64,000 nucleotides of DNA from Aplysia californica (lineage: Eukaryota): positions 2,156,009 through 2,220,008 of the forward strand of contig NW_004797278.1 of assembly GCF_000002075.1 (NCBI RefSeq). The letters are read 5' to 3'. This document shows positions 1-54,614 of this stretch, piece after piece; positions within the stretch are counted from its first letter, which is position 1, and each line of letters opens with the position of its first letter. The notes under the pieces are model-generated. The model had not been told where the DNA came from, made no database searches, and saw only the letters and a program-made list of their open reading frames with translations. The translations under genes were made by a program, and so were the position numbers.

Positions 1-216
1 TAGAAGGAGCAGCACTTAACAGCACCCACCAACCACCAATAATTATGGTTATTGCAGACTTAATTAAAATCTGGGTCCTTGTTACATTGTTACTAATGAA
101 AAACCAGTCTTGAGAAACAGGAGGTGTGAGAAGAACTTAAAAATCTCTTTGCAGACATTCACCTGCTGCAGATCTGGTAATGACGTAAATTTATAAAGTC
201 GTATCTTTGACATTAC

Positions 217-335
217 CTCCAGGGCAATCAGCATATCAGAGTTGTAGGACTCCTCGGTGCTGATGAGTTCTTGAATGACACGCTGGCGCTTTCGCTCTAG
301 TTTAGACAGCTCCTCCTGAACGTTGTCATTCATCC
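217..335 (-). CDS. ITSN: ITSN-L first DH (RhoGEF) domain exon
   Basis: T|GG junction gives W, followed by [39 protein letters not shown], which matches the DH CR1 motif (ELxxTExxY). Acceptor ctcag at 336, donor gtaatg at 216. Confidence 0.9.
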
Positions 336-3300
336 CTGAGAGGTACAGAAGAGGAGAAGACAATCCTATTAGTCGGCCAGTCAATCAGAACACTTTTCAA
401 ATCCCTTCCATGCTGTGGATCAAGCCAATATCACCTCAACAGGACACCAGGCCTGCTATATTGTCCTGTAACTTTGCAGTTTGATAACAAATCAATTCAA
501 TGCATTTATAGACACTTGAGAAAGACATACCAGGGAAGGAGATTTGAATCAATGCATCATTCTGTGAATGGCAGCACCACTTTCCAAACTCCCAACACGC
601 ACCCTCAATCATATTGCTTTCTTTGTTCCCCAGACACATCTTTTGTTCGGAAGCCCACTATTAAACCGCCCGTTAGTATAAAGGGAGGCGACAAACTATC
701 ACAAAAATGAAAACAACTCCTGGTCTTGGAGTTCCCAATCCACATTGATTCAAAACTGCTTTCCCAACTTGAGTGTTGTGACATTTTATCAGTTGAGCAA
801 AGAGAGATATCTTCCCAGACTGGAATTTTCAAATTTAACGATGATAATGTTGGCCTATAGAGCTGATGATGATCATGACCGCAGAAGTAGATGGTGCTGC
901 AGCTGCATGGCTCCCAGAGGTAGTTGAGGAAACAGATCCACGATTGCAGATTCCCTGGTTGGAGCAAAGGCAGATTTAAGTGTGTTTTTCTCTCCTTTTC
1001 TTCCAAAAATCTGCTGGATTTAGCTGCTCTTACAATCTTAATACTCTGAACAAGGCTGTTGTTTGCAATTCTTTCAAAGTTATTTTAGTCAGAGGACAAA
1101 GACAAGAAAATTGAAAGGCAGATGGACAAATTGTATTCCCCGATGCAGAAGAGGGTCTTGCCATCAAATCAATATGATTGAAACAACAACAAAAGTTTTT
1201 CATTGGGATGTGAACAGCGACTAGCTAGACACACCTCATCTTGTGCATGTAAAGTTGTGTACTGTGGGATTGCAAGATAACAATATGTTGCCAGTCAATG
1301 GATGACAACAAGAACAGAGAAAAACGAACAACCATACAGAACAACCACCTACCAACTGCTTTATTTTTTGGTTGTATCTGTCATCTGTACACTAACTAGC
1401 AGCTAAGTCCGAAGACTGATGCTGTTCTCTGGTTCTACAAACTAATGAATGATTTTTAAACAAATTTCCTTTTGCACTATGTTTAAAATGATTCTTTATC
1501 TTGTTTAACCCTATCCGTACGTTGTGTTTTACTATCGTATCCATACGACGTGGGGAACTCTGTGCCACTTTCCAAAGAGGAAATTTACTCGTTAATCCGA
1601 TCCGAACGCTTTGCATAGCAGTCTGTCAAAATGATTTTTTGAGAAATACTGAAAGTTTCAAAGAGATCTTTGTACTAGAAGTATTCTAAAATGTGAAGAA
1701 ATGCAACCCCGGGGGTACAAAATGACCCCAGGGCGTACGGATAGGGTTAAGAAAAACAGCAAAAGTCAAGACTTGCTTCGAGGATTTCATGAATGAAAGG
1801 CTTTAAATTGCCCAGTTATCATATTGTTTTTCTTTATGCTGTGAAAATTTTATGAAGATTGGAAGAATAATGGTGGAGTTATTTTTAAAAAAAGTATATA
1901 GAAAAACCACGCTTCGAGAAAATGGACGATAAAGAAAAATAAAAGATATACTTTATGAGGAAATGGTGGTGACAAATATGCCCGGTATGGGAAGAAATAA
2001 GGCTTAAGGGGGTTCTTTATGCAATGAAATAGTAGTAAAAGAGGCTGAAGAAGCAAAAAATGCCTACAACTTAAAGCCCATAGTTTTGAGCTGAATCTGG
2101 AGCTTCGGGGTGCCGCTCCCCCCCCCTGAAAGAAAATAAGGTTTTCAGGATTAAAAGGATGTAGATTCACTGGACAATTTACCACATTTTGACAATTAAC
2201 CTCTTGTCTAAATGACATTCACATGGCTACAGATTTTCACCGGGGAACATTAGGACGCCCAAAAACAAGAACATAACAGATACAGAAAGAGACAATTGAG
2301 CAGTAGCGAAATTATTCTCAAGACAAAAACATAAGCCTTATGAGGATGAAGTATACGTATTCAAACAAATGGAAAATTCAAAACAAATGAAACAACACAG
2401 TGTCATCTTGCTGAGGCTCTTTAATAATAAATTATACAGTAATAATACAACGGTATCTATTAAACATGGGCTACAAAGTAAATGTGCACTTTCTACCACA
2501 TTTTCAAGCTAACAACATTTACCAAATACTAGAAATCTTTCACCTGGAAGAAGCTTGTCAGGAGGACTTTATGAATTCCTAATAAATAAGTCTTCCAAAC
2601 TGTAACACAACTATGCCAATGGCCATTTAGAGCGGTAAACAAGAAAGAAACTTGAAGTAAAAGAAGGTCTGAACTTCACTAGAATTTTCAAAGAACTCCT
2701 TTTCAATGTCACTAGATGATAAGGAAACAAACATCATAACATTTAAGGATGCGTGAGCCTCCTCGGTGACAGGTTTATCCTCTGACTCTAAATGGTTACA
2801 CAAGGAACCAGACTGAGGCTAACAACGCTAATGAGCTTGGACAATTAAATCTTACTGTTCAAGGGCAAGAACATCTAATTCTATACAGAATAACTTAGGG
2901 TTGGTGTAAACAGCACATGAAAACTGCAAAAAGTGATCGGTATTGGACGTAAAGCAGGGAAGAGAAGTCAAATACGGGTAGTTTCACTCCATTTCAGATA
3001 AATATGTGAATCTATCAAAATAAATAGTAGTTTGAATTCACAAGAAGTGCAAACTAAATACCCTGAAAATAATATGGCCATAAGCAACACAATCATTAAC
3101 GATAAAGAATCCCTTATCAGATACCAGAATATGTTGGGTATATTTATAACAATAGTCATTAAAAATCCTTCTCGGTTTACACTCCATGAAAAATAGTTAA
3201 TAACTTTGGCTATAATACACTTGCAAAAAGTGAAAACACAGTAATATGACTTTTATAGGTTAGCGTTGCCAGGCTTAAAAAAAAAAAGAGAGAGGAGTGT

Positions 3301-9300: not shown

Positions 9301-12300
9301 TGAATGACAAACTTGCCAGCTGATGCCCAAAGCATCATACAAAAATGAATAAATACTTGCACCAGTACTAACCTTACGAGTTATTTCTCGAAATTTTGAA
9401 AAACCAATAGCATTCCTGAGGAATACTTCCTGATAACACACCACCACAGATCTAACAGAAAGAAGACAAGAAAGATGAGAAACATCTAGGCCTTCGCTAA
9501 GCTTAACAAGACAGCAATAACAGGTCATGTACAGGAAAGCCCGGGATACAATTCAAGTCCATTACAATGTCTCTTTGAAAGGGGAATCATGGCACAAGTA
9601 GGAAGACCGTTCCACAGTCCATCAAATGTTCTAGACAGTATAAGTGCATATGATGCACGTGTAAATTGAAGAAATAATACAAGACATATTGAAATGCCAT
9701 ACAAAGTAGTGCAGGATCTTTTTTTATATGAAAGAAAGCCTTTCTGAGGTTAGTTCCAAACAACTGGATGTTTGAAGTTGGAGGAAACCGTAACCACGGG
9801 AGTGCCTGTACTTTTAAAAAATTACTTGAGACCTAACAGCCACTTGAGCACAGCAAATAGAACCATGTGACAGAAAAGAAAAGGAGTTGTATGGGGAAAG
9901 CCATGATGTAAACAGACCAGATAAACAAAGCGTTTACTCACACGACTGAGACTGAGGGTTCGGGGTGACGTAGTTTGATGGGAACACCCCGGTCTGGCCG
10001 TCCAGCTGACCACTCCACCAGTCAGGGTTGTCTCGGCTGAGGACTGTAATGACTGCGTCTTTCTGGAATGTCAGCTCGTCATCATTTTGAGCTGTGTATG
10101 CATAGAGGGCCACCACTGTCTCCTCTGAAAAGGAGAGAAGAAAAAGCTTGAGACACATTCAAAACGTAAAAAAATATTACCTAACTTCATATTTAGACTA
10201 TGTAATCTTCTTAACCCAACAGCCATATTATTTATGGTTACTTTTCCTATCAAAATTTACCATGTTTAAAGTGCATCACTGTTTTTTCACAATTATGACT
10301 ATGCAACATTACTGTCCCTCCCTAGAGGGTTCTGCTGATCAAAGTAAAACTTATAAATTCCCATTTACCCTAAGAGAGTCTCCTCTCTTCAAGAGTAGAA
10401 AATAGTTTCATTAATTCACTAATTCAAAATTGGGTTTGAAAAGTTTCTTGACTAAGAGCTGCAAATGTTTTCAAGATACGAAGACATGTAAAAAGCAACT
10501 TACGCTGATTAATCCCTTGCATGCCATCCTGACTGGCAATGCTCTGAGGAGTGGCTGAGCGGCTGCCTTGTGATCCAACCTACAAATAGAAAGACATTCA
10601 GCTAATAAAAAAATAAAAACCTACAAAAGTAAAGGACATTTATCATCTCTAAAAACAAATAACAGACCTCCTATAAATATTTTACATCACAAACATGAAG
10701 TCCAATTTCACTACTCAAAGTCAGTAACTTTCATAGGCGATATGGCATTCTTTATAAATAGAAAAACGAAGCTTTGGAAGGATGATCTGCTATTCTCTAA
10801 AACCTTGACTATTCAGTTGCTTTCTTCAATGTTTCGTTCCCTAAAATTGTATAATTAAACACACTATGGAAATATTGACCTCCACTTACTTATTCTTAAA
10901 AACATTGATCTGTAACAAAACATCACGGTAAGTAGAAATGCTATTATTCTCACATACATTGTAATAAAACACAAGGACTGATACATCCTAATCAGATCAT
11001 TCAAGATGGATGTGTGAGAGGACGAGAATAAGGTGATTGATCAATTAAAGGTCACCCCTTTTCTCAAAAAATGAATACAGAGTGGTAAAAAAATAATTCA
11101 GAGTGTGAAGGTGTCCTATTGACCAGTGCCCATGAATGCTTAAGTTTAATTTTTTTGGTTCAATAACAAATACAGGGCAAAGAAGACACATTACCTGTAA
11201 ACTCAATTACCCTATATTTGAACCCTCAATATCCATCATAGATTTGGAGTATTCAGTTGACTTTCATCACAAGCAAATAAAAAAAATGTTTGACAATTGC
11301 AACCAGGGCTTGCTCTCAGAGCTATCATGACAATCTATAATGGAAGTATGTCTTTCCTTCCTGAGAGGACAACACATCAATTTCCACTCACCATAAGACC
11401 GCCAGCAGCAGTAGGTTCTGGGGTGGACCTTGCACTAGCTGAGCCCAAGAGCTTGACATAGTTTGCTGGGAACCATCCAATCTTTTTCTTCTGCCCCCGA
11501 ACCTACGAAAGAACAACAGCTGGTAGAGAATCTCTCACTGAGACATGGTCTCCAAAACGATCAAGGAGAACCTCCAACACAGGCAACAAAAAGCCATAAT
11601 ATTTGAAACAGATGGTGAACTAACTGCAACCATTTTATATTTTGATAATTTGTTTTGTATAGCTGTTACTACCCTTTGAGGTGGGTGCTTTTTCTCTTTG
11701 CAAATTAATGAAACGCTCTACTCACATCCCGGAAAAGACTATGTGAAGGTCAAAAGTAACTAAATAATTCCGCTGAAGCAGCTCACTCATAGCCTCTGGT
11801 CAGGAACATGGTCATCATGCAGAATTTTTTAAAACAGAAATTGCTCATTATAACTGTAACCTACTTAAACAGCAAAAATATCACCAAGGTAGTCCACTTG
11901 TTCCTCTAGACAATAAGCAAATGGGGGACAAACAGCTGTTCATGACACTTTTATACAAGACAACAAAAAAAAAAAGAAAAGAAAAGTTCACAAGCCTGGA
12001 AACTTGAAATTGATTTTTAAAACTCACAAAGCCAAATAACTAACAACATATGATCATTGCCTCAGTAGTAAACCAGGGGACACATTCAGTACAAGTGTTC
12101 CACGCAATTTACTGATCGACGCAGTGCGTTTTAACGATCGCATAATTGTGCAGTAATCTTAAGATTGCACTGCGCATTTTAACGATTGTATAATTGTGCG
12201 TCAATCTGAGGATTGCGTTAATACTTTATATTTTTGAAATTAAAAAAAAAAAAATTAACTTCCATCTTAATTCTTTTACTCACACCAAGGAACTTGTTTT

Positions 12301-15300
12301 TTATTTGGTGTTTTGCTGCGCTCGCAAATGCATAAGGTCATATGAGCGCACGAGACACATTAAACTTTTTCAGTTGGTAGGAAATTTTGAATTTTGCCTG
12401 GGTGGCGGCTGAAGCCTACTCTTACTGATTTTAGACCACCAAGGGATTTTTTACGTGCGCAACTTAAACATGGGCCCTCAAAGATTTTTCACCCTTATCC
12501 GAGAAGGCTAGGTGTAGATCTTTCCTATCAGAAGATCAGGGGTGTGGCTGAAAGACAACAGTAAGAAGGAGCCAAGGAGTAGCAGTAGAAAGGCTGCAGA
12601 AAGAGTCAGAAGCCCAGAGAAGGGGGCAAAGGAGATAAGAGGGTGGGGGCAGAAAGAGGAGACCAAAGCAGATGACAGAACATTGCTAGAGAGCAGGAAA
12701 GGAGGTGAAAAGAGACAATATTAGAGAAGAAAATTTTCCGTTGCTTCCTGGATTCGAACCCAGGACATTTGAATAAGAGGCCAACACCTTAACCTCTAGG
12801 CCACGTGAGCTTCACATCAAGGAACATTCACATATATTTTCAAAAGTGTAAAAATATGAAAATTAAAATTAACAATAACGTATGAAACTGAAGGGCCCAC
12901 AAGAATGATACAATTATACTATTGTTAAAACGTGCAGTGCTATCTAAAGATTGCCACGCAATTATACGATCGTTACAACACGCAATTGCGCCAATCAGTA
13001 AATAGCGCGTAACACAAGTACCAACTACCTAAGCTACTCGGGGTTTGCGAGATGATATTTTGTACCTGGAGTTCACCTTCCCACCAGCCACGAGGACTTT
13101 TCTGACGCACGTTGATCAAATTGCCAGTCTCAAGACTTAACTGGCCTGTGCCAGTTGCCACATAGGGTGCTATTACCCGAGCAATCTCTGTCGAAGAACA
13201 AAAAAAGGAAAATATCTATCTTTACAGTCTACATATTGTATACCTCAACCAATAGATGTGAGCATATTTGAAAATGTGCTAATGCATCAACCACAAATTT
13301 GAGCATGGATTTTCAAGGTCCCACCTCAAGGCCAGGGGGCAAAAGGTGCTGCTTCTGAATATTATCATCGTATTTCATGAAAGGAAGAAGTAAAAAAAAG
13401 CTCCATATTTTTCATTAAAACCCTACAATGGATACTATGAACAAATAAAAAATTTCATCACCTAGATAAACCAATAACATTATGTTCTATATTTCAGAGA
13501 ACAAAATAGTCTACACCACAGCAACTGTGGGGTGTTCATCGTAATCAACAAATCATGGAGACCCTATAAAATTTTTCCTAAATCAGTACAGTTTATGCGT
13601 GTGAAACCAGGACCTTGAAAGAAGGATCAAAGCTGTGGAGATGAGATGCTTCCGAAAAATCACAAATGATGAAGTCAAACAACGAATCAAAAATGAAATT
13701 GGACCCTATGCTGACCTTCTCACTCTGGTCAGGAAATGCAAACTGCAATGATATGGACACATCACCCGTTCATCCAGCCTTGCCAAGATGATCCTGCAAG
13801 GCAGTGTCCAAGGAAAATGGAGCAGAGGCAGACCGAAGAAGAGTTCAGAGGACAACATAGAGGAATGGACAGGCCTGGAACTCAAAGACATGCTCAGGAA
13901 AGCTGAAGACTGGAAGGAGTGGAAGAAGCTGGTGGCCAAATCTTCAAAAGCGCCCGACAGACATCCAGTCTACAGGATAGATGAAGTGAAGGAAGTGCTG
14001 TGTGCTTAAGATGTTTCCTATGACAACATAATTATGAGCACACAGAAGAAACATGTCCTTACCTGGTTTCTTGGTGCTTTTCTGCTCGGGCTGCAACAAA
14101 AGAAAATACAAAGCAAACTATTATTGAAAAGGCAAAAGAAAGGAATAACACTCCCCCCTCCCTCCCCCCAAATCTATATACTGAAGAAACGATTATCCAC
14201 TCTTGACAATTACGCATTTTAAAAAAATCGATGTTAACTAGAGGTCTTTAAAAAATTCAGCTACATTGATCAGGTAAAGTTTTTGGTAGTACAGTCTCAT
14301 ATTTCAACTTTTTTTGTCCTCATGCTAGCCCCTACATTACTGGTATGTATGATGCCCAAAAAAGAGATTAACTTTAAAGGTGAAACCCAAGCAGCAATTG
14401 ACATTGGACATTATGATATAAAATAGCAACAGGTACCGAAAGTAAAATCTTGTAAAAGTAGTGTCTCTTCAAACATAATATAATGAAAAGACCATAGTTA
14501 ACCTGTAAAACTTCATACCATCTAGAGCAGGGCCATAAAAAGAACAAGCAAATGACAAATTCAAAATGGGAAGGGAGGAAAGACTACAAACCGCTGATAA
14601 ACTCATGACAAAAAGAATGACTTCATCAGCCCCACAAGGACATACTATAACAGTTATCCATAATTCATTTGTCATCCAGAGAAGAATATCTTCATGACTG
14701 CTACTCAAAGCAGAAAAAAAATTGAACGTGACTAGCATGGAAAGTTTCATGCAGTGAAACAAAATAATTTAGCGCGATTCGAAACCCGTGACCCCAAATT
14801 GAACAACTCTAAAATTTAAAATTCTGGTTTTAGTTCATTCTTGACATTCGCCGCAGAACTGTTTCACTTGGGACAAGATGCTACAAATGAGAGGACAGAA
14901 CAACCCCCCCCCCTCCTCTCCTAAAAAAACAACCCAACAACAAAAAAGAAGGGGGGGGGGGGGGGGGGAAGAAACGAGACGAAATATGCAACGCGGAAAA
15001 ACTGGGTAATCTTGGGAACAAACAGGAATAAACTGATTCAGGCAAGAAGGTTATTGACTGTCAGATTGTGCAGTATGTGTAAATTATAACTTGAAAGATT
15101 TCTTCTTCAACCAACCCTGTAATACAAATAATTTAAAATTTAAGTGACTAAACAATCAAAGAGAGGTAAGTACAAATGACTAAGGAAAAGGGTAAGTTAA
15201 TACAATATACAATAATAAAATCAGGACTAAATGAAATAAGTTAACTTGGGAAAAAAGAAGAAAGAACCAATCAATACAGTATCGGTGCCTTCTCTGTAAA

Positions 15301-18300
15301 CTATTGTCTTTACATCAGTATAATCTGACCTCAACTTTCTATCAACATTTTTCTTTCTGGTCTATCTTCCTACTATGTAGGCTGATGACAGAAGTGTCAC
15401 AAAGGCTTGATTTAAAAAGTCCTATATTAACCTTCAAATACATAATGGAACAAAAGGAAAGCTCTTATAAGGGGAAGGGAGAAACACATTCACACAAAAA
15501 AACAAGTGAAACAGGGTTAGATTTAAAGTACCTATAGTGTACGATTGACAATTTTTTTTTTCACATTCTCTCCCCACTGTTCAACAAGTGCAGGGGAAGG
15601 ATTCAACATCAATAATCATTTAAGGCTTGTAATGAGGGTAGCAGGTGGGCAGGGCAGAGGGGGGTGGCAATCTTATGAAACGTTGAGAGATACCCCAGCA
15701 TTTTTGTCCGGAGCAGAAGGAGCAGTTCCGGCACTGGCTACTGGTGGGGGTGGGGCTCGCCTTGACCCACTTCTAGTTCTACCCATGCCTGAGTCAACTT
15801 GTGTGGTCATCGACTCCATAGCGGCAGAGCTGAGGGCTGGGTTGTCTTTAGTGATGATCCCATCTTTGAGTTTAATCTCCAGCGAGTTGTTCTGAAGGGC
15901 ATCCTGCTCTAGAGCTACCAGATCTGGGAGGCTGGAAGTACTTTGAGGAGGCTTGGCACTTGTCGGAGAAGCCACTAGGTCCAGAGAGAACAGGTCATCA
16001 TTTTTAGAGGATGATTTCTCCTGGCTGGTGCCTTGGTCAAGACCGTCAAACAGGCCAAAATCTACACCACCAAGCACACCAGAACCTTTTAGGTCACCCT
16101 GAGAGACTGGTGCTGACAATACGCCAGCAAAGGGATCTGAACCTTCTGGAGCGGGAGCCGGCTTGTCAGACGGCGCATTATCATGAACATTTTCCTTTTC
16201 TGCTGTAGCTCCAAAACCTTCAAGGACAGCAGTGGTCATTTCTTTGCCAAAGGGATCATCATTACTTAAAGCAGAGCCCCCTTTTCCAAATGGGTCCCCT
16301 CCTCCGAAGAGATCTTCACTGGTACTAAATGCATCAACACCACCCGAGGCCTCGTCTTTCTTGACACCTGATGCCGCAGTGGTTGGAGAAGGTGCTATGG
16401 CATCCAAGAGTCCTCCTTGAGGCTTATCATTACTATTATCCACTCCAAGGTCTCCCCAATCCAGCCCACTTAAAGCGGCAAAGCGATCCTCTCCACCTCC
16501 TTCCTCAGCAGGCAGTTCCGTGCCAGATGCAGTAGTCCCTAAAATGTCAGGAGGATTCTCTGACTTGACTGCAGTAACACTGCTTTCTTCCGACTTCGCC
16601 AAGGTTAAATTGCTCAACAAGTTAGACACATTCTCTGACATAGGTGTAGCGGTAGACACAGTGGTGTCAGATCCATCAGACAGAATAGCAGATGACACAG
16701 ACTGAGTGGGTTTGGTCTCCGTGCTCAAGGAAGCACTCCCAGTTGAACCAAAAGCACCACTCATGTCACCAAATCCTGAGAGTAGATCCGAGCCAAAAGC
16801 TGATGAGGAGGAAGATGTTGGTGCAGGATCAGCACTGGCAAATAAGTTGTCCACCGGACTTATGGCAGACGCAGTGGTGGAGCCAAACATGTCATCCATG
16901 GGACTTGTAGGTGAAGCAACTGCACTGAACATATCATTTGTGGAACTTGCTGTCCCAGAAACACTGGCAAACGGGTCACCCATGGGATCCAAACCTGCCC
17001 CGGCGAATGGATCATCCAGCTGGTTTGAGGCGGATGACAAAATATCTGATCCAAAAGGATCATTGCCACCAAAGTCACCGAAGAGAGAATCTGAGTTCGT
17101 TGAATTTGGAGGAGCTTTATCAGGCTGCAAAAGGCGGAGTTAGAATGAAAACATAAAACATTTACTAAAGGTCCCTTTCCAACATTAAAAAGCAAGACAA
17201 CAGGTACAGTGATGTTTATGGTATTTGAGAAAAAAACAAAAACACCTTTACTAGCACTCCCAGAGGAAAGTTATACAAAGAAACCATGCACTGGAAATCT
17301 AGGACAAACGCTGTGATTTTAAAGAATGAAAAAAAAAGTCACAATGGTGAACAGACGGCTAAACTGAGGAATCAAAAAGCTTCCATGCCAACACTACACG
17401 CAAATTATATAAGCAGTGCATGCAAACCTAGTACACATGAAAAGTAAAAAAGAGACTTTGCAATGTTATGGATAGAGAAGAAAAAGAATGTCCTAAATGA
17501 ATTATTCGCCAAGAACAAAACAGCAACCACAACCTAAAGCAGGAGTACTGAAAAAGTTACACAAACTTTAATGCATTTTGGTAGGCCAATCACCAAAGAG
17601 AAATCAAAAACAGAAATGTGGTCCCCAAGAAAATAATTAATTACAATAGGAATATGTGTCACGACGCCGTGGATTCTGGCGAACATCAATTTTTTTAAAC
17701 ATGGAATTATTGATATCATCTTAAAGCTTGTTCATTTGTCTTGCTCTGTTGAAAAAAATATCCATCTATCTTAAATAAAAGTCCAGATAATTGCAATAGA
17801 AGGAAGCAGGGATCACCTGGTATCAGCCGTAACATTAGTGAGAAAATGGCCGTCAAAATTCGAGGACTTCCATAGCTTGAGTATCCTTGGGAACCGAACA
17901 TTTACAATTTGTGTGCCTTTGACCAACGTTTTTCAATACCATCTACGCAGAAATTTGTTTTCAAATGGAAATGAAAGGTGTTCAACCCCCNNNNNNNNNN
18001 NNNNNNNNNNNNNNNNNNNNNNNNNNNNNNNNNNNNNNNNNNNNNNNNNNNNNNNNNNNNNNNNNNNNNNNNNNNNNNNNNNNNNNNNNNATATATATTA
18101 TCGTCAAGTCATTGTAGAAGCAGTGCGCACCACCTGTGAACGGAAACCTCATTTGTTTACAATGGCGTCTTAGAAGATGGACTTTCCCAATATTAGATCT
18201 AAACAAAACTAATGACAAATTGAACAGTAAACTACAGCGACTTCAGACTCCTTAATATAACTGTGCGCCTTTTAAATGATTCTGAATCACCTTTATTTTA

Positions 18301-19189: not shown

Positions 19190-22100
19190 GGGGACAGACA
19201 GGGGGTAGGGGATAAAAGAAGAAAAAAAAGACAGAAAATTGGAAGAAAAACATTAAATTGCCCAATAGCGTGAAAAATGCTGATTTCTTTGATTTAATTA
19301 TTTTGATCCCTCGTATAAGTTGTTTTTTTAAGTAACAAAAAACAATTTAATCTATGAAGCAAAATCTAAACAGCTTTTCCCATACTAAAGAATGTGGCTC
19401 CAAACATATTTTGAAACAGTTGGCACAGATGGAATTATTGATCTCCTACTACCAGAAACTTGGAATAAGATAAAATAGTCAGTGGACAGCTCTTTCTACT
19501 TAGGTGAAACCACAGAAATTTTCTACAGAGTGCAAGTAGCGACATCACGTAATTCGACACTACAAGAAAGCAAACAAACAATCAAGGTTGCCATTATTTC
19601 CCACATCTCACCTGAATATCAAGTTTTTTTACGTAATTAGCAGGGAAGATGCCAGACCTTCCCTGCTCAGCGATGGTGCCAGACCACCAGTCTCCCGAGG
19701 CAGCCGTCACAAAGATCATGTCACCTTCGCTGAAGGTGAGGTCTGACGGCTCATCAGAGGTGTACGTGTACATGGCAATATAGTATTCTGAGGACCCAGA
19801 CAATGTATAATTGTGAAGTAGATTTACACAAAACAGTACTCAAGTCTCACCGAAAGTGGTAACAAATATAATGCTCACATCCTTTGTTTCTAAACAAACC
19901 ATGACAGATAGAGCGGAAAGCAATAAATGTGAAAAGAAACTTAAAGCAACATACCAATGACGACAAAAACTGCAAGTCTCTCCATAGCTCTAAGCCATCC
20001 AAATTTTCAACATCATACTATACATCCAATATCCTGAAATGGTCTCCTAGGAACCCAGCAACTCAGGAAGGCTGAAATCACTGAATGATCAGCAATATTC
20101 ATATTACTCTTATCCATTATGAATACTTAAATACATCAACTCTGGACGGTCAATGTAAAGTTATCATCATAACCAAATTGTGCTCAGGACCTCTACATTA
20201 AGTCTCACCTCCCTGAGTGTCTGGGGCTGGGCTAACACTGGCTGGTTCTGGAACTTTGGTCTGGGTTGGTGTGGAACTTTCAGCTGACAATCTAAATGTA
20301 AGATCATAAACAAGTCAGACATGCAATACTAATGAAGAAAATAACTACAAAACATTGAACTTAATACCACCACATTATTTTCCACTCTATTTTCTGCTCC
20401 AACAAAATTATGAATGAATTCATACCATCACATTATTTTCAAATCTATTTTCTGCTCCAACAAAATGAATGTCTTAATACCATCACATTATTTTCAAATT
20501 TATTGTCTGCTTCGACAAAATGAGTGTCTTAACATTAATACCATCACATTATTTTCAAATCTATTTTCTGCGCCAACAAAATGAATGTCTTAGTATTAAT
20601 ACCATCACATTATCTTCAAATCTATTTTCTGCTCCAGAAAAATCAATTATATACGCAGACATTTTCACCTAAACACATGATAGTCTCCAAAAATAAATGT
20701 GGTTTTTTTCTCTTTGTTTTGGAGATTTGCTGTCGACATTTTGTACACATCAGGAAGGCCAACATTATACAAGCCTTATAACAACAACCGATAAAACAAA
20801 ATTCTGAAAAATAAATGGAAAAGGTCCTTACCCTGACTTGGAGGCAACACCAATCAGTTTAACATATGCCTTTGGAAACCAGCCACTCTGTGAATGAAGA
20901 AACAGAACTGGTAAAGACTCATGGGTTTGTATAAATTTGAAATAATGTACAGAAAATTCTACACATCTGTCCAGTGAATTTATTTCCGACAATATTCCCA
21001 AATACATTTTTTGTACCAACTTTAGGGAAAAAGAGGGGCAGTGCAAACATGGAAAGTTAGCATTCATCTTGCCCTTGATAAGTGAAGTGAAGTAAGTAAA
21101 AATGGGTGAACAGGCATCAAAGTTGCATAAATAGAGATATCTTTTATTTGAATATACTAATATAACACACAGTAGTTGTAAAAAGTGGAAACGTCATATT
21201 TATGAGATCCACCTGGTTTAGAACAAAATTATTTTGTGTTGACTACAGCAAAAGTGAAGAAAAGGGCAAAGTCAGCAGGCTCCCTATTTTGTTTGTTTTA
21301 GTAGAGGTTTTACGGCGCTCGCAACTGCATAAGTTCATTTGAGCTCCCTGTGAAAATGTAAAGGAGCGCAAGAACATAATACTAAACTCTCTGAAAAATG
21401 TTGAAAGAAGGATAGACAACCAGGGAATCATCTCTCTGTCAAGACCTCACATGGAATGTCCATCATCACGAATGAAAAACAATTAGCTCAATCTCTTCCG
21501 TAATACCAGCGTCTGTGGTGTAGCAGTCAGGCACTTCACCGTCACACTCTGAACACATGATTTCAATTCCCATGTGGAGAGTGTTGTCAATCATCTCAGC
21601 CTGTCTGCTGGGACATTGTATCCCTCTCAACCCCCATTGCCCCTGACCGGCAGGGTCAAAGAAGCCCAACTCCTAAATGATCTAAATAGTGCTAATTAGA
21701 GCATGTTGTTATCTATCCTGCACTGATTGGGGCATAAAACATCTACAATTACATTAGTTCCATAGAACATTTGTGTCACAACGCGATGGAATCAGGAAAA
21801 TTTCCTTTCAGGATTTCAAGAAAATCCCCTTTTGTCAATTTTTGCGCATGTGGAGTTATTGTTATCTTAAAACTTGTTCATTGCCTGTCTTTCGAAGAAA
21901 AACCCCTTGAAGTTAAGATATTTGCTATTGAAGGAGTGGGGGTCGTCTGGTATAAAAAGTAAAATTAGCGAGAAAATGGCTGCGAAAGTTTGGTTAATTC
22001 CAAAGCTTGAGAGTCATTGGAAATTGAAAATTTACATTTCTTGTGCTTTTAGTCAATGTTTTTCAGTAAAATCCAGACATAAATTTGTTTTTAAATAAAC

Positions 22101-24680: not shown

Positions 24681-27600
24681 CAGCTATTGCTGGATCGATA
24701 ACAACAACTACAACAATAACCACCAACCCGTACTGGCTACAGAGCCATTTGTGCTGCCCCACGCTATACTAGAGCCTGCTGTGGTTGTGGTGCCAGAGAA
24801 AGCAGAGTCCCAGTTCACAGAGGAGCTTGTAGTGCCACCACCTGCTGAACTCACAGCATCCGAACTGTTAAAGTCAAACCAGTTGGCATCAGCTGCAAAA
24901 ATATAAGAACGCAAATTTGTGAACGAGAATCAGACCAGCTCATTTTAGGCGTACTATGACTGACAAGACAACAATCAATTTTCAATCATTAAACTTCAAG
25001 CATGGATAAAGTCACTAAAAAAGTTTAGGCCTGCTGAAAATGACCCAAAAAGATCAACCTCCCTCCCAACTTTCGAATAAGTTACATTAGCCAGACATCC
25101 AGACATAATACTGAAGCTTATCTGACAGCAATAAAGTTCTATATTTAAAAATCTTTCACAACAAAATTTACCATTAGAAGCTGGTGCTGGTGCTGGTGCT
25201 GCTGCAGGTGCTGGTGCTGGTGCTGCTGCAGGTGCTGGTGCTGGTGCTGCTGCAGGCGCTGCTTTAGCTCTGTCAAAGGGAAAAAACAAAAAGAAAGCAA
25301 TGATCATCATCGCTCGCAGCCATTATAGAAAAATAACAATCATTTAGGTTATTTAAACAGACAGGGACATCCACAACTCTCCCACCCCCTTTTCCAATCT
25401 AAAAAAATATACAAGATGTACCTTATATAATGAATATAAACATTGCTTAAATTTGGCGAACATAAAGTTGTTATGAAATATTAAATCTGAACATCAGAAT
25501 ATTAGACAATTTTGACTATGTAAAATTCACAGCTCCAGTGATCAGAGACTGAATTATTTCCATCAACACTGCTGGCACTGTGCAGACTTTTCAGTAATAT
25601 ACAACAGGACAGTCTTCAGTATTATGTTTCTACCTTTGCTGTTGCTCTATTTCCTGTTTCAGCTTTTCTTGACGTTCCCTTTCTTGCTTCTGTTTCTGCT
25701 GCATTTCTTGAGCAGCTTTTTTCTGCAAGGTGATCTTTTCTTCTTGTTGTTTCCTAAGAAGGGGAAGGTCTCTCTCTAGTTTGGATATTTGTTCCTGCAT
25801 GTTCTGAAATCATGACAAAATATATAACATTTGAGAACATTAAATCACAAGTATAGAGTGTATCAGGTGCATTAGGCAGGTAGTCATGTAGCTATTGCCA
25901 AAAACTAACCATATACATAAGAGGCTGTCCAAAAGATTTATTGATAAAGCAGCAGTCTACAGATTTATGATGTAACTTTTAAACCCTTTCCGGGCGTATC
26001 GCCGATTTATTGGCGCGAGTCCACACCCCTTGCGGACGTATTGCAGATATATTGGCTGTGATAGGTGTCTCAGTATTGTTTCATTTTAACACGATCCGTA
26101 TTTATAATTACTTTTTATTGCTATAGAAAAACTCAGAAAGGATTTAGGAAACGAAAACATCTAGTTTCACTTTGTCAAAGTGTGGGTTTGGGGAAAAACG
26201 AGTGAATTAGTTCTAGTGGTCTTGCATCAACAAAATGATGTAACCGGACTCTGTATAAATATCATAACTTAAAGAAAAATTGGAATATTGCTTCCAAATA
26301 AAAAGCTGCACATACAGAAATTTATGGATTACGCTCTTGGCCTGTATATGATAAGATAGCTATGCTGATTTGCTTTCATATGTTTGGTGAATGTTATTTT
26401 TTCGGTCAAAATTTATTTTTCTCATCATCATCGCCATTTCTAACCCTTCTAATGCATACTTATGTTCAAAATTAATCCTTGTTTCATATTGGAATGTATT
26501 CCTCATTCAATTTCCTTCAATTTGATATATCATATGTTACGTTTTGAGTGACGGTTATGCTTCTATGAAGTTATTTTGTACACCAACTGCATAGCCAAAT
26601 CGACCCACAAGTTAATTATGTCTAGACCCAAAAAAAACTACATCCGTAGAGTTAAAACAATTCATTTAACATTAATATCCAATACCATTTTTTTCCACCA
26701 CACAAGAAATCATGACAAAGAGAACAAACCTTGAGCTCGGCATTGTTACAATCAATCTCTCCCAGTCTGGCTTCAGTATCACTTTCTAGCTGTTCCACTT
26801 CTTTGTTTAGCTGCTGGATTCTCGTTCGCTTGGTGTCAACACTATGCATGACAGTGCGATGAGCGTCCGCTAAATTAGGATAAAGCAATTTAAAACATGT
26901 TGATATTATTTGTTCGGACAGGACCATTCCAAAGTCAGGAACTCTGTACAATTTTACTGAAAAAGTCTTTAAAAAAAAATACAAGTCACCAAAAATTCTT
27001 ACGCACAATACACAAATCTCTCACAGCATCTTCCTTTGAGACAGCAATTTTAATAGTCATTCATTATTTTATGTAATGTAACACACCAAAACAAATTATG
27101 ATTTGGCAAAAAGAAGGCAAAAAAAGAAGATATGACTTAGACAAGAGCTTAAAGGAGATGTTAAAGTTTACTTCCTTATTCATTACTTTGAACCACAAGG
27201 GTGCCTTTGGCATGGCTTAGTGTTTAGTCACACAACAGATCAAACACGCTCACAGCAGCAATTTACTTACATAAAGGTGTGCCCTGAGCAGTCTGAACTT
27301 GAACATTCAAGACATCCTTCTCGCTGTTGAGGCCAGACGATTTCTTGTTGAGTTCCTACAGGAACAAAAAGTATACTGTACCTGCTATTTTGAAACAATG
27401 TTACAAAATAAATAACACTGTACCAGCTATTTCAAAGCATTGCTTCCCATAAACAATCTCCCTACATTTCTTTTTTTTTTTTTTTTTTTTTGATAAAGTG
27501 TTTTTACGGCGCTCGCAACTGCATAGGTCATATGAGCGCGCGGGACACTCCTAATATTTTCAGTTGGTAGGAAATTTTGAATTTTGCCCGGGTGGCGGCC

Positions 27601-30600
27601 GAAGCCTACTCTTATCGATTTTAGACCACCAAGGGATCTTTAACGTGCGCAACTTGCACACGGGCCCTCCGAGATTTTTCGCCCTTGTCCGAGAAGGCTA
27701 GGTGTAGATCTTTCCTACCAGAAGATCAGGGGTGTGGCAGAAAGACAGCAGTAAGGAGGAGCCAAGGAGTAGCAGTAGAAAGGCTGCAGAAAGAGTCAGG
27801 AGCCCAGAGGAGGGGGCAAAGGAGGTGAGGGGGTGGGGGCAGAAAGTGGACATGAAAGCAGACAACAGAACATTGCTAGAGAGCAGGAAAGGAGGTGAAA
27901 GGAGACAATTTTAGAGAAGAACATTTTTCGGTCGCTACCCGGATTCGAACCCGGGACCTTTGAATGAGAGGCCAACACCTTAACCTCTAGGCCACGAGAG
28001 CCCCCCTACATTTCTAAAAGGCTGGAAACAAAAAAATGTAAAAAAAAAAAAATTAAGATAGAGTAATAAGATAACAAAGCATTCCTTCAATGTGCAGGCT
28101 AAGGAAAGCATCTTGACAGCAAAGACTAAAATAGACAGAGCACTCCCCTCAGGGAGAGGCTCTGACTTCTTTGAGGAACAAAACTTGTTCCAAACAACCA
28201 TTCTATTTATTGACTGACATGGTTTCCAACCAACTAAGGCCCCATTGTAAATGATACTATTTTTTCTCACTGGTGAAATAAAAGTCAAGACCAAAACAAA
28301 ATAGAAATAGGTTGAGGATACAATTTTTTTTCAATAGCCTCTTCAGGTGCTTTTCTCATCATGTTGTCAAAATCCCTTACAGCTTCTTTCCTTTAAGAAA
28401 AAAAGCAACAAATGCGCCAGTGACAGCGTGACATGAAAGAAAAATGTTTTAAACGAATTCATCCCAGTAATGCAACAGTCCTTTTAGTTCACTTTTTAAT
28501 CTAAATGCTTTTGTAGTAAAAGTTCCAAGTCCCCTCATTTCTGAGAACATTGGGTTATAAAAAGTTGAAAGCAACGGCTGCATGTGAATGTGATAAGAGC
28601 ATATTTTAGAGCAAAAGCAAATAGTTGAGTGAAATTTTGACAAGAGAAGTAATTATTTTCCACTACGCTATCATAGAATACATCAGGTCATGGCATTTCA
28701 AGCCATGTGAAACACAGGTGGAAATCTTTTTAAACTAAAATCTCTTTGCAAATATAAGTTACCTTTGATACAACTGCCAGATCAGGCCATACTGGCAAGA
28801 TCACTCAAGTCGTTGGTATGGAAACGGTTATGGTAGAAAAGTATTTTAAAAAACCAAAGGCCCCAAAATTAACACCTACCATTGACTGCCTCTCATATAA
28901 GTCAATATCAGCGAGGGTGCGGTCACGAGATACTCTCATTCCATCGATGCTGGTGGTGAAATCAGTGACACCACCCTGGACTTGAGTGATTTTCAGGGAC
29001 AACTCTGCTTTCTTGGCATCCTATAGACATAATGGAAAGTTACCGAGACTTCATTTCCTTCAATAATAGAAAATGTCATCAGCAGCAAAACAAAACTGAG
29101 CCAAATGGACTCACCAAAGCTCATAATCAGTTCTAATGTACAATTCCTTGTACACAAATGTTTCCTTTCATTAGTTAACTTTTCCAGTGCACATCTAGGA
29201 TCTCAATTTTAAAAAAGACAACTTTAAGGTTTCATTTTTTACCAAAATTCCCCCCCCNNNNNNNNNNNNNNNNNNNNNNNNNNNNNNNNNNNNNNNNNNN
29301 NNNNNNNNNNNNNNNNNNNNNNNNNNNNNNNNNNNNNNNNNNNNNNNNNNNNNNNNNGTAATAGAATTGGGGGGTGGGTACTATCAAATTTAAGCGCCAC
29401 GATGTTTACAGTAGTGGTAGATCTAGATCTAGAATCTAGTGCAGTCGCAACCGCAAGACAACGAATACAAGACAGCCAGGTCTTTTTCCTCTAGACTCTC
29501 TATATTTTAGAGTTTCGTCCCAACTATCGGACATGATCATTTATTTCTTCTCTAGAATCTAGATCTAGAATCTAGTTATTGAGACAAGAGAGAGCAGAAC
29601 ATGTCAGAAGAAACAGAAAACACGCCCAATGACATTGCTTTGATTTTGAAAAACATTGGTAGATCTACTGCTGCTCTCAGATACTCTTTTGACCTCTGCA
29701 CCCAAGACTTGCGGGTGAGACACGAGCTATACAAGTAGATTAACTGGGATTCAGACTAAACTATAGACAATAGGATACAAATAAAATACTAGTAGCTAAA
29801 GTAGAGTAAACTAAAAGGGAGGGAGAAGGAAGACTGCGGCACACTCCGCCGTCTTCTTCATCTCCTCATCATGTCTGAAGTCGTCTGTGTAGAGATTCTA
29901 GAATCTATAGATCTATGATCACAAAAGCAATTCTGACCGTCTTACCTTCACTATCTCATTGAAATCCTCATATCATGCAAATGCAGTTTATCTTACAGTT
30001 CAACTGCTGATGTAAAATACAATCATTATTTTGACACCCCACGACAAGAGGCACACAGATCGAAATTATTATTATCAGTTTGCGGAGTGCCCCCCGGTTG
30101 TGGACACATAAAATTTGCAATGTATTGTGGGTAAGGGGGCGTTTCCGGAAATTTTCAATTTGTTGCGAGCACGTACGGTACAGTCAAGGCTGTTCGAAAA
30201 TAGAGTCGAATCAACACAAACACCACACACTGTGAAGGAGTCTGCCACTGCACAGTTTCCACACATAGAAAGTCTTATTATATATCATAAATTTGAGTGT
30301 ATTGCTCTAAAGTTGTGTGGAACTGACGAGTAATCACGTATAAATTTGTTGGATATATATTTCCGTTGTTGATAAGATGGTGCATTTGTGTGAAGATTAG
30401 GAATTAGACCAACAAGCTAGGTTTCGAGGCCTAGCCTAGCCTAGCGTAGGCGGAGAAAACTCAAAATCAAACAGGGGAAAACAGTTTGAATTTTAATGTT
30501 GTTAACAATGCAAACTTTGAGAGGAAACTTCATTGGGCCAGACGCTGTTCTTACGAATGAAGAGGTATGTATGATTTAGTGAAATTTGGCCCAAGGATGA

Positions 30601-51100: not shown

Positions 51101-54100
51101 TTCTTATTCCCTCCTGCCTGGTGTTTGATGAAGGCACAGCATGGCCGCTTTCTCCGTATCCTTTTTTATTGTTGATGTTCTCGCAAGTAAACTAGTGCTG
51201 AGATTTTTTTATGTTATTAGTGATGAGCTTCCTCTCTTTTTAACAATGTGGAAATGGAGTGAACATAGTGTATTATCTTGAGCAGAGTGGCGTATGTTTC
51301 AAGGATGGATAATTTGTGGTTGTTTATTGATTAGACTAGCAAATTTATTAAATATAAACAATAATTTTTCTTTTGAATTGTCGAAGTCAATGCCATGTTT
51401 CTTGCTGATCTGACTTCAAGTGAGTGCTTGTGACCTGCCCACCACTTCAGTGTACAATTTTATAAAAATGAGGAAGACTATAAAGAGCGCAAAATAACAA
51501 TGATAAAATTCAAAAGTCCCTTGAGTGCACACAGTACTGTACATAATTCTGTATTACTTATTGCACTGATATAACATAAGTGGTAACCATAATCTTGTTT
51601 TTGATGGAGAGTTTATTGAAGATGAGCTCAGAATATTTTGGTCAATGCAGACAAAGATTTAGCTTTCATTTTTATTTTCTTAACTTTTTGATCTTTTCAT
51701 TGTGCCAATTGTATCTTTGTAAGCACTTGTTGGGATTTTTATAAGTTGGAAATGCAAATCATCATCTTAGCCTTTCTCACTCTGGATCAGGAACTGGCCA
51801 CAAACAAACACTTTCCACCTTTCCCTATCCTGTGCTTGTCGCTTGATGTCGCTCCATGTCTTCCCACTTTTCTGTACATCCATTTCTGTGACTCTTCTCC
51901 AGGTTCCACGTGGCCTTACCCCTTTTTACCATGTGGGTTCCAATCTAACACTTTCCCTGTTATGCAGCTGCTTGATGTCCTGAAAGTGTGTCCAATCCAT
52001 CGCGAACGCCTTCTTCCCTCTTCATCTCTGACTGGGCTCTGTCTCATATTCTTAATACGTCTTCGTTGGTGATCCTGTCTGTCCATCTGATCCTCAGCAA
52101 CTTCCTGAGACACTTGTTCAAGGAAACCTGGATCCTCTTTATTTCAAGTCTGAGATGCGTTCCAGGTCTCACATCCATACAGCAGGAAATTCAACAAGCA
52201 GCCAGTAAATCTTTCTCCTTATTTTCAGGAGTACCTGATGACCAAGATTGTCTCCCCTCTTTTCCTTACCAACTTAGTTATTTGATTAGTTCTGAATGTT
52301 GAGGGGCAATAATGTTGAACATTTGTACGTACAACCTTCCAATATATACTGGATTGTCCCACATAGTCAGAGCAGAGCTCTTGTGGGTTTAATTTGATAC
52401 ACAAACTATCCCGCTGGTTTGTAAGTGCTTCCATCATCTAAAGATTTCTTCAAAGAAGCAACTTTCAAAATAGGATTAAAATAGAGGTGTGCTTTGTAAC
52501 ACTTTGTTTTATTTCATGTTTTCTAAAGATATGCTTTCTTTGAATTTTTAGAAATCATACATGTTTAAAAATCATGGCCCTGCTAGGAATGTCTGAAATA
52601 ATGAAGATAATCCAGAAATGTCAGTGTCATTACCAGAGAAAATGCAGAAAATTTGGTTTACTTGATATACTGTGTTTACTGTGCTTACTGCTCATTTCTG
52701 TCCAAAGATTTTTGTACTGCGTGAACTACCTTTGACTTGAGTATTTCCCAGAGTTTTGCTTTTGTACAAAATACTGCCAACATCTTTTTGGTCTGTTACT
52801 GCAGTTTGATGTGAAGATGTTGAGCTCTAAAATGAAACTGATTTTTTGCATAATATTTCTGTTTCACCGTCTAGTAATACTTGTCCCTTAACTGCATCAG
52901 ATATTCTTAAAGATATCATGGATCGTATTCAAAATGGAGAGTTCAGGTATGCCTAAATTAATCATTCTGTTTAATCATTTTTTCCTATGCTATTAATCAG
53001 GATATCATAACATATGGTTCTTTTATTGTTCTTGTGTGTGGTGTGGTTTGCTCCTTCTTTCCTTTCAAACATCTATCATCCTAATCTCTCTTTCTTCTTT
53101 TTTGTGTACTTTCTTGTAACACCTCTATTCTTCAGCACTTTTATGACCTTATTGCGTTGCAAGTGCTTTTGTACTCTTACTAAAACTAAAAACTGTTCTT
53201 GTCTCTTGAACACAAATGTAGTTCATGAGTGTTTGTCCTTAGACACGATTGATTTTTTTCAGCTCTGTTAACATAGTTTACGCGTGTATACATTTAGGGG
53301 ATCATTCTTGCAGCTAAAATCTTATTTGTTTTGGAATATTTACCTTGAAATGATTTAATTAATCATAACACAATCACAAAAGGCTTACCCAAGGAAAATA
53401 ACAGTGCAGTATTTATTACTCAAGGAACCATAACTTCAGTTTCCAAGAGGATATCAGGATTGATTTGACTCATTTGATCTGAAGAGAGTCATGAAAAAGA
53501 TACATGTATTAGCGCAGATCATTATCAACCGGTCGGACAATTAATTTAATAAGGAAGTAATTTGGATGTCTTTTATAGTTGTTTCATTTGCTAACAGCAA
53601 ATTGTTCTGTCTTTTTGGACAGGCAACATCACTTTTTCCTTCAAATTATAATATCAATATGAGGAAAAAGACCTATACTTCTGCTGTGTAATAAAGGAAG
53701 GTACAAAGTCAAAAGGTCATTTTTTACAATTATTCATTAAGTCTCTTTCTCCGAGGGGGCAAAACCCACTATGCCGAGCCCTCTTTTGATACGAAATCTA
53801 AAAGTGACAAATACATCACTAAATTGATCATCATCATCATCATCATCCAGTGCCAGATCTGCGACAGACATCGGCGATCTTGATTTTCCATTCATTCCTT
53901 TGCTCGGATGCTCTCAGAAAAGCTACGTTTCCCTGATTTTTCCCTGTTACCCATTTGTTTAGGTTCCCTAAGTATGTTGTTCTGGGCCTACCCCTTCCTC
54001 GCTTGCCCTCAATATTGCCAGTGAGAGCTAGGTGTTCAAGACCCTTATGTCTATTCAGGTGTCCCAAAAACTGCATTTGTCGTTTCCTGATTATTTTTAA

Positions 54101-54614
54101 CATTAAGAGTCCCATGTGGGCTTCATCAAGCACTACCTCATTTGATTTCTTTTCCTTCCACGATACTCTTAGCAGTCTCCTAAGAAACCACATTAAATTG
54201 ATCATTAAGTCAAAACAAGTAAACTTGCTTTGATAGTTGTCCATCTAATGAAAGAACTCCCGGTAAAAGAGACCTGTTTTCAGCTAATTTGACGTCAAAG
54301 TCGTAAAAAAAATGTGCCCAAACCATCTCACTGGCATCGGGGGTTGGGGGGGGGGGGAGGGGGCACGAAACCATTGTGCCAGCGTCTGGGCAATAAACAT
54401 TTGTCTTATTTTGCCGAGAACGAGGAAGAAAAAAAAAAGAAGTCTTATTTTGTTGTATTATAATTATATTTGTATATTCAATTTGATTCTATAATAGTTT
54501 TTGTTATCATTTTTCAGATGTAATGAAGTGTTGTCCATCCCTTTGACTGAAGCACCGGAGGTGCTGTCTAGGAAAGACCTGGACTCAACAAAGAGCTTGG
54601 TAGTCACTCCTTGA
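42252..54614 (+). CDS. CRYZL1: Quinone oxidoreductase-like protein 1 (zeta-crystallin-like, FERRY complex subunit Fy-4), 350 aa
   Basis: 11 exons, 1053 nt, in frame: 42252-42308, 44178-44255, 44801-44921, 45505-45573, 46355-46536, 48696-48759, 48995-49093, 50440-50573, 51050-51155, 52901-52946, 54518-54614 (TGA). CRYZL1-like motifs: VKACA, GRDVAG, AYTAVHY, EETGGVGVD, VRLF, PHKQDII, NLQLDPPDSQQLFLRGA, ILKDIM. Confidence 0.93.
42408..42682. mobile_element. Merlin/IS1016-like MITE
   Basis: TIR GGCGCTTTTTCGGTAGTTCCCACCCC...GGGGTGGGAACTACCGAAAAAGCGCC, perfect 8-bp TSD GAAAAGTT, GG...CC ends. Confidence 0.85.
45740..46127 (-). mobile_element. Headless retroposon, copy 2
   Basis: Perfect 13-bp TSD GACCAGAACTCTT; aligns to 24268-24680. 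Confidence 0.88.
48117..48192. repeat. Imperfect (CA)n microsatellite
   Basis: Directly visible. Confidence 0.85.
49351..50213. mobile_element. piggyBac-like non-autonomous DNA transposon
   Basis: TTAA|CTCATTCGCTACG...CGTAGCGAATGAG|TTAA, 863 bp, no transposase ORF. Confidence 0.88.
51156..52900 (+). other. U12-type (minor spliceosome) GT-AG intron in CRYZL1
   Basis: 5' splice site GTATCCTTTT matches the U12 consensus RTATCCTTT. Branch site CCTTAAC at 52886-52892 ends 8 nt before the intron end (tgcatcag), with no polypyrimidine tract. Phase is consistent with the flanking exons. Confidence 0.92.
51758..52165 (-). mobile_element. RTE-clade LINE 3' fragment
   Basis: RRSRWIGHTFR...VLDWNPHGK; (GAT)n tail. 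Confidence 0.75.
53832..54193 (-). mobile_element. RTE-clade LINE 3' fragment
   Basis: FLRRLLRVSWKEKKSNEVVL...FLGH...GNIEGKRGRGRPR; (TGA)n tail; TSD TAAATTGATCAT. Confidence 0.85.

Follow-up and report, generated by a model that had tools for sequence, protein, structure and literature searches.

A large exon encoding a disordered array of predicted AP-2-binding motifs inside the SH3 array of a sea-hare intersectin gene

Intersectin and Eps15 are paired pioneer scaffolds of clathrin-coat initiation, and current models place the AP-2- and FCHO-binding DPF array in Eps15 and the SH3 array in intersectin. The stretch of Aplysia californica DNA analyzed here (64,000 nucleotides (nt) of contig NW_004797278.1, positions 2,156,009 to 2,220,008; the whole stretch is called the window, and its own numbering is used below) raises the question of whether the sea hare has placed an array of the former kind within the latter. 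The minus strand carries a gene that is, by its domain order, an intersectin (ITSN/Dap160) with two EH domains, a coiled coil, the SH3 domains A to E, and then probably DH onward. Between SH3C and SH3D lies one open frame of 1431 nt with repeated DPF motifs. Is this frame an exon of the gene, and what could its product bind? We consider, with a probability of about 0.6, that it is a translated, lineage-specific intersectin exon encoding a disordered array of predicted AP-2/coat-binding motifs.

The large exon and its host gene

The translation of positions 15694-17124 on the minus strand comprises 477 codons without a stop. The surrounding open frame (15676-17139, 488 codons) extends only a few codons past each exon end and is the longest in the window, exceeding the next longest (159 codons) threefold. 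The exon, its splice sites and its splice partners are as follows (a slash marks an exon-intron boundary).

15694..17124, minus strand: large coding exon of phase 0/0, 1431 nt, 477 amino acids (aa); supported by the open frame, the splice sites, and exons at the same position in two relatives, L002 and L037
17125..17160, minus strand: 3' splice site of the large exon, a pyrimidine-rich tract that ends in ttttgcag, read directly
15686..15693, minus strand: 5' splice site of the large exon, gtatctct (GGG/gtatct), weak but usable
19612..19787, minus strand: SH3C exon, the upstream splice partner (Pfam SH3_1, E = 4.9e-13), phase 0 at its end
14063..14090, minus strand: 28-nt linker mini-exon, the downstream splice partner (cag/CCC...CCAG/gtaagg), with homologous ...KKPG mini-exons in L002, in L037, and in the loci from JGI metagenomes
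13060..13188, minus strand: first exon of SH3D, mapped by tblastn, 97.6% identical in L002 and L037

The acceptor of the large exon (...ccgccttttgcag/CCT) is rated good, the SH3C exon ends with CAG/gtgaga at 19612, and an in-frame stop codon follows seven codons past the donor of the large exon. With phase 0 at all three junctions, the reading frame would survive both inclusion of the exon and the skip junction 19612->14090. The exon has a G + C content of 50%, versus 36% in the flanking introns, and a strong codon-position periodicity; none of 2,000 nucleotide shuffles of its sequence stayed open. It is present as a single copy in the assembly (927,310,431 bases in 4332 contigs). A tandem-repeat origin of the frame was ruled out, given that no tandem repeat was found. 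The sequence-only reading had claimed a 1431-nt exon of phase 0/0 between SH3C and SH3D, and the open frame, the splice sites and the phases all bear this out. By its gene structure, the segment is a true coding part of intersectin, located between SH3C and SH3D.

The remainder of the gene was located on the same strand with an intronless intersectin-like open reading frame (ORF; L032, described below) as the tblastn query, and by reading ORFs. EH-type exons are found at about 36.4 kb and about 33.5 kb by tblastn, followed by coiled-coil exons from 32.4 to 25.6 kb (tblastn matches at 32.4-31.1 kb, ORF segments at about 26.7 and 25.7 kb) and by SH3A-E from 23.9 to 10.0 kb. Of these, SH3B, SH3E and the two exons of SH3D were placed by tblastn together with ORF reading, and SH3A as ORF text only (about 23.9 and 23.5 kb). 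After SH3E, ORF text alone indicates a DH-like open segment at 85-384 (minus strand). Invertebrate intersectins are given as short-form only in two reviews (PMC3753573, PMC3645719); the sea-hare gene seems to encode the long form.

Motifs of the encoded segment and their fate in two relatives

The product of the large exon is rich in serine (77 residues), glycine (54), alanine (52), aspartate (47) and proline (39), contains one tryptophan and neither cysteine nor tyrosine, and has a net charge of -43. A Pfam search with it returned no family. AlphaFold2 gave a mean predicted local distance difference test (pLDDT) score of 40.4, with no residue at or above 70 and essentially no secondary structure, a result that is indicative only, being a single-sequence prediction.

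The DPF motifs are located at residues 22, 38, 50, 277, 290 and 330. Six copies compare with a mean of 0.18 in composition-preserving shuffles, and none of 5,000 such shuffles reached six. Similarly, D.F occurs 12 times (shuffle mean 2.1), FG 12 times (2.4), and [FW]G[PDE]-hydrophobic three times (0.1), whereas NPF, FxDxF and WxxF do not occur in the exon. All motifs listed in the sequence-only reading were recovered exactly: the six DPF contexts, DMF (twice), DAF, DLF (twice), DLL, FGDF, FGDM, WGDL and DFGLF. The nearest DPF motifs are spaced by nine residues, and the tandem form DPFx2-3DPF is absent. Within the exon, three regions can be distinguished.

16750..17091, minus strand: N-terminal motif cluster, residues 12-125, including FG repeats, from the translation and the motif count
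15985..16488, minus strand: second motif cluster, residues 213-380, with weak collinear matches to L002 (GLDFG..., SEDLFGD)
15736..15762, minus strand: RRAPPPPVA, resembling a class-I SH3 ligand ([RK]xxPxxP), toward the C-terminus of the exon product (shuffle P = 0.15, not statistically significant)

The last of these might bind the adjoining SH3 domains in cis. A matching site, RPAPSQP, is present in L037 (near 11258-11278), and none is present at that end in L002.

The two relatives were reached through the SH3C exon, a search with which gave four genomic ORF fragments of 81-85% identity, all reading on into the intron. A two-exon profile built from the sea hare and L002 then found L037 on a 32-kb ENA contig. 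One of the four fragments lies in L002 (ENA ERZ24894579, a 995-kb contig), where about 370 nt separate SH3C from a large open frame downstream. The exons in the two relatives are as follows.

L002, 10533-11852: large exon, 440 aa, ttctcag/CCA ... AGT/gtaagg, phase 0/0
L037 (ENA ERZ26859052), 9974-11308: large exon, 445 aa, gattcag/CCT ... GAT/gtaagg, phase 0/0

Both exons are located between SH3C and the ...KKPG mini-exon, with SH3D and SH3E following in L002 and the same neighborhood in L037. The SH3C, SH3D1 and SH3E sequences of the two relatives are 83-98% identical to those of the sea hare, whereas their large exons cannot be significantly aligned with the sea-hare counterpart (BLASTP E = 0.2), and only collinear patches of motifs line up. 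With flanks this similar around an insert that is unalignable, the locus offers a clear case of motif-only constraint on a disordered region. What the three exons have in common is a length of 440-477 aa, a net charge of -36 to -43, the lack of cysteine, and the enrichment of the same motifs: DPF occurs six, four and five times in the sea hare, L002 and L037, respectively (0.07-0.18 expected), D.F 10-12 times (about 2 expected), and FG 8-12 times (2-3.4 expected). For the L002 exon, too, AlphaFold2 gave a low pLDDT (42, no residue at or above 70).

L002 and L037 are similar enough to each other for a residue-by-residue comparison. Their large exons share 45% amino-acid identity, with a dN/dS of 0.29 (YN00) to 0.40 (NG86) at a dS of 1.07-1.5. 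All four DPF motifs of L002 are kept in L037, and phenylalanine, the best conserved of the common residues, is retained at 17 of 24 positions, whereas the figure for all other residues is 38% (Fisher P = 0.002). The conserved blocks include DPFADFGS, QEDPF, DPFG.EDPFS and LFGDL, and each of the two exons contains one DPFx3DPF. Two further conserved blocks, KKAMAFTDIMQ.SLL and DL.MIEMDAS, contain no DPF and are not seen in the sea hare. Taken together, these alignments indicate that the large exon is a translated disordered region constrained at short motifs. Conservation of the motifs on a diverged background was the comparative test proposed for the exon; indeed, DPF, D-x-F and FG are kept in L002 and L037 on a background too diverged to align with the sea hare.

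The exons of L002 and L037 also contain repeated D-I-Y-x-N motifs (Y.N occurs two and four times, against 0.15-0.29 expected), which we take to resemble sites of the phospho-Tyr/Grb2-SH2 type. The L037 exon has, in addition, an internal duplication, with ...DIYLNFE..SKKSSSDTQG.F.Q present twice.

Distribution, splicing and proposed function

How widely is the exon distributed? A scan of JGI metagenomes with the SH3C alignment yielded 24 host contigs (L008-L031) with SH3C 56-72% identical. Ten of these carry SH3D1 only 823-2146 nt downstream of SH3C, and in these ten the interval holds a homologous mini-exon (NVPKST.GSKKPG) and contains neither an open segment of more than 117 codons nor a DPF array. 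Five other contigs (L003-L007) are too short to bear on the question, as they end ahead of the position where the large exon could appear. The JGI host contigs (Ga0209xxx/Ga0056xxx) may come from gutless oligochaetes. If these loci are annelid, as is probable, the large exon is not a general lophotrochozoan feature. The intronless intersectin-like ORF L032 (554-7102 of JGI Ga0187759_1064934) encodes 2183 aa with EH, coiled-coil and SH3 regions, and its SH3C-SH3D gap is 34 nt, without the large exon; L033 is a companion to L032 as an intronless intersectin-like locus, and the source of both is presumably an intron-poor microbial eukaryote. Because both the JGI host contigs and the intronless ORF lack the exon, a lineage-restricted insertion into the ancestral intron between SH3C and the mini-exon is indicated.

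Protein searches added little. A word-indexed search with the whole exon, which covered matches of 262-835 aa only, found none, and an exhaustive phmmer search of 1.84 billion representatives gave 0 matches, a blank that is uninformative on relatives because even the orthologous exon of L002 is undetectable by sequence. The best look-alike in the ESM Atlas scored 0.75, which is meaningless. A recent copy of an Eps15 tail was ruled out as the source of the exon, whose only match in the genome is itself.

The exon may be a cassette, as the sequence-only reading had it, or may be included in every transcript. Its length is divisible by three, and this is automatic because phase-0 introns lie on both sides; the symmetric phase is therefore compatible with skipping and provides no evidence for it. 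That the exon is real and constitutive, so that every intersectin molecule carries the insert and no splice switch exists, is accordingly a reading of considerable weight, though not the favored one. It gains from the strong gtaagg donors in L002 and L037 and from the dN/dS below 1, which shows that the exon is used. Several features speak against it. The sea-hare donor is weak. At 1.4 kb the internal exon is a size outlier among exons of mostly tens to about 200 nt, in support of the earlier description of an outlier encoding an acidic disordered region, and large internal exons among small ones are often regulated. Skipping (19612->14090) would keep the frame and recreate the ancestral join of SH3C to the ...KKPG mini-exon that is used by relatives without the exon. 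Finally, in the intron flank upstream of the exon L002 and L037 show unusually high conservation (z = 6.6, versus -1 to 2.5 for the flanks of neighboring exons), which is a weak hint. Weighing these features of the gene structure, we regard a cassette as slightly the more probable arrangement.

The preferred reading, a translated, lineage-specific exon with predicted AP-2-binding motifs, can be set out as follows. The exon arose in one invertebrate lineage, represented so far by the sea hare and two close relatives, within the ancestral intron between SH3C and the ...KKPG mini-exon. It adds approximately 440-480 disordered, cysteine-free residues with a net charge of about -40 to the SH3C-SH3D linker. 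Selection holds the frame, the length, the charge, and the phenylalanine-centered motifs (DPF, D-x-F and FG, and LFGD in the relatives), while the spacers drift freely. By analogy with Eps15, Dab2, AP180 and epsin, the motifs most likely dock multiply onto the alpha and beta2 appendages of AP-2. Beyond what its EH and SH3 domains bind, intersectin would then reach the adaptor layer itself, with high avidity. We infer the binding partners of the exon, and thus its function, by motif analogy only.

The spacing of the motifs allows some refinement. Single DPF motifs bind the AP-2 alpha appendage by avidity, whereas the tandem DPFx2-3DPF fills the trough of the FCHO mu homology domain (muHD) (PMC4921775, PMC3315808). 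Since the DPF motifs of the sea hare are at least nine residues apart, they would be of the alpha-ear type and not of the tandem type that binds the FCHO muHD. The tandem DPFx3DPF of L002 and L037 may also bind the FCHO muHD.

Could the insert act mainly through other partners? Such partners might be the gamma-ear of AP-1/GGA or the clathrin terminal domain (through DLL/DLF), or the insert might be a spacer, cohesive or charged, by which SH3 spacing and phase separation are tuned. The gamma-ear-type motif [FW]G[PDE]-hydrophobic occurs three, one and two times in the sea hare, L002 and L037, against about 0.1 expected; LFGDL is conserved between L002 and L037; DL[LF] occurs three times in each of two species; the net charge of about -40 is conserved; and the conserved blocks of L002 and L037 without DPF suggest further partners. 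However, it is DPF whose enrichment is strongest and most consistent across the three species. DL[LF] is inconsistent across the species (three, three and no occurrences in the sea hare, L002 and L037; P = 0.01, 0.007 and 1, respectively), and matches of the gamma-ear type are scarce and coincide in part with the general FG/D-x-F pattern. Thus, we consider it unlikely that partners other than AP-2 dominate. Of the adaptor and coat motifs named in the sequence-only reading, the DPF array stands, being enriched in three species, whereas the clathrin-binding DLL/DLF and gamma-ear motifs are too few or too inconsistent to be upheld. Coat nucleation by exon-bearing intersectin alone and binding to AP-1/GGA are speculation.

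The most far-reaching version of the AP-2-binding reading combines it with the splice switch. Sea hares and their relatives would then make intersectin with and without the exon; the form with it, perhaps the neuronal one, would have a built-in Eps15-like AP-2-binding array (FCHO-binding in some species) and could seed or stabilize coat-initiation condensates while depending less on Eps15. We put this forward tentatively, with the odds against it. If true, one scaffold would couple the adaptor layer, the EH partners, dynamin and synaptojanin (via SH3), and Cdc42 activation, and a natural intersectin-Eps15 chimera would be available in a classical synaptic model animal.

Two more radical alternatives concern the exon itself, and both were rejected on the in-phase splice sites, the dN/dS values and the shuffles. 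If the segment were a nested gene of its own or an unspliced transcript, lying in an intron and outside the intersectin mRNA, this would explain why no annotated or predicted intersectin protein with the segment was recovered, and why it appears as an independent ORF in the prokaryote-style gene calls for L002 and L037. These calls, however, are mechanical ORF calls; in all three species the acceptor and the donor are in phase with the neighboring intersectin exons on the same strand; and in the sea hare no ATG occurs ahead of exon codon 49. A nested gene is therefore very improbable. A chance open frame or a decaying, functionless exonized intron segment is effectively refuted by the shuffles, by a frame of 440-477 codons at the same place in three genomes diverged past alignment, by the dN/dS of 0.29-0.40, and by the conserved motifs.

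Several points weigh against the preferred reading of a translated, lineage-specific exon that binds AP-2. The donor of the sea-hare exon is weak. No predicted protein with the segment was found in two protein libraries, although these blanks are themselves weak, owing to the length filter and to the divergence. Three genomes that carry the exon and a single group that lacks it are the basis for the lineage restriction. Moreover, the function is read from motif analogy alone, and DPF, D-x-F and FG are short motifs.

What would follow from this reading is that one lineage has a DPF-type array inside intersectin, with selection acting on the motifs while the surrounding sequence drifts. This would be a natural experiment on the extent to which the function of Eps15 can be carried by the scaffold in cis. 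With Aplysia in standard use for presynaptic physiology, isoforms that contain or lack the exon could be compared directly in identified neurons. Should the exon be constitutive, or should its motifs not bind AP-2, it would be a lineage-specific linker expansion of modest interest.

Some other features of the window were noted. On the minus strand, at 24711-25322, between the coiled-coil and the SH3A exons, there are two open segments, one with Trp/Phe motifs (NWFDFN, NWDSAF, AWGS, GWW) on a background of serine, threonine and glycine, the other an Ala-Pro repeat. Both are candidates for additional linker exons of intersectin, likewise disordered and adaptor-binding. Near the upstream end of the window, retroelement-like ORF fragments with text resembling RNase H and reverse transcriptase are found at 63566-64000 and 53846-54244 (minus strand). 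The window contains three gaps of undetermined bases (N), at 17991-18090, 29258-29357 and 60861-61052, one of them within the intron just upstream of the large exon.

Known systems of comparable design

The closest counterpart in motif content is the C-terminal region of Eps15 and Eps15R, which is likewise disordered and acidic and contains many DPF motifs; Eps15 is a known intersectin partner. The intersectin exon has the features of this type, that is, a disordered acidic region with DPF above the expectation from composition, in all three species. However, the Eps15 array is denser and partly tandem (DPFx2-3DPF), whereas the sea-hare exon has six DPF motifs at least nine residues apart, and no sequence similarity between the two is detectable. 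The sea hare also has an Eps15-like gene (G000:C859:201757-237671, minus strand; L050-L055) composed of EH-type exons, a coiled coil, and four exons rich in DPF; these four together contain about 14 DPF motifs, mostly as DPFx2-3DPF. Its last DPF exon occurs twice with identical surroundings (202185-201757 and 214188-213760) in a region with many N gaps; the second copy stems either from the assembly or from a recent tandem duplication. Because a separate Eps15-like gene is retained, the intersectin exon would supplement Eps15 and not replace it.

Within intersectin itself, the vertebrate ITSN1 SH3A-SH3B linker is the nearest parallel, as it is also an unstructured linker inside the SH3 array and binds AP-2 appendage domains directly (Pechstein 2010, cited after PMC3645719). 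The earlier statement that mammalian ITSN1 obtains its DPF array by binding Eps15 is overstated in that it leaves out this direct contact. The ITSN1 linker lies between A and B and not between C and D, is much shorter, is encoded in ordinary exons, and is not a DPF array; the insertion seen in the sea hare is distinct from it and specific to one lineage.

For a splice-switchable adaptor-binding module, the best precedent is Dab2 with its p96 and p67 forms. The spliced central region of p96, of about 219 aa, contains DPF, NPF and clathrin-box motifs, decides the localization to coated pits, and binds FCHO2 (PMC3315808). The host, however, is a cargo adaptor with a PTB domain, and its splicing is documented, whereas the sea-hare insert lacks NPF and is a putative cassette.

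AP180/CALM, with DLL/DLF, and the gamma-ear ligands are similar in that they contain long disordered regions with D-hydrophobic-F/L and FG-type motifs. Background on these two motif classes is given in PMC11246429. The exon is not assigned to either group, as the respective motif counts are too few and inconsistent.

A description of a DPF array inside intersectin was not found in the open-access literature, nor in a survey of how intersectin and Eps15 evolved (PMC4824007), which is weak evidence of novelty. The underlying principles, namely an AP-2-binding intersectin linker and a splice-switched DPF module, are known, and the DPF array in intersectin is a lineage-specific, conserved variant of them.

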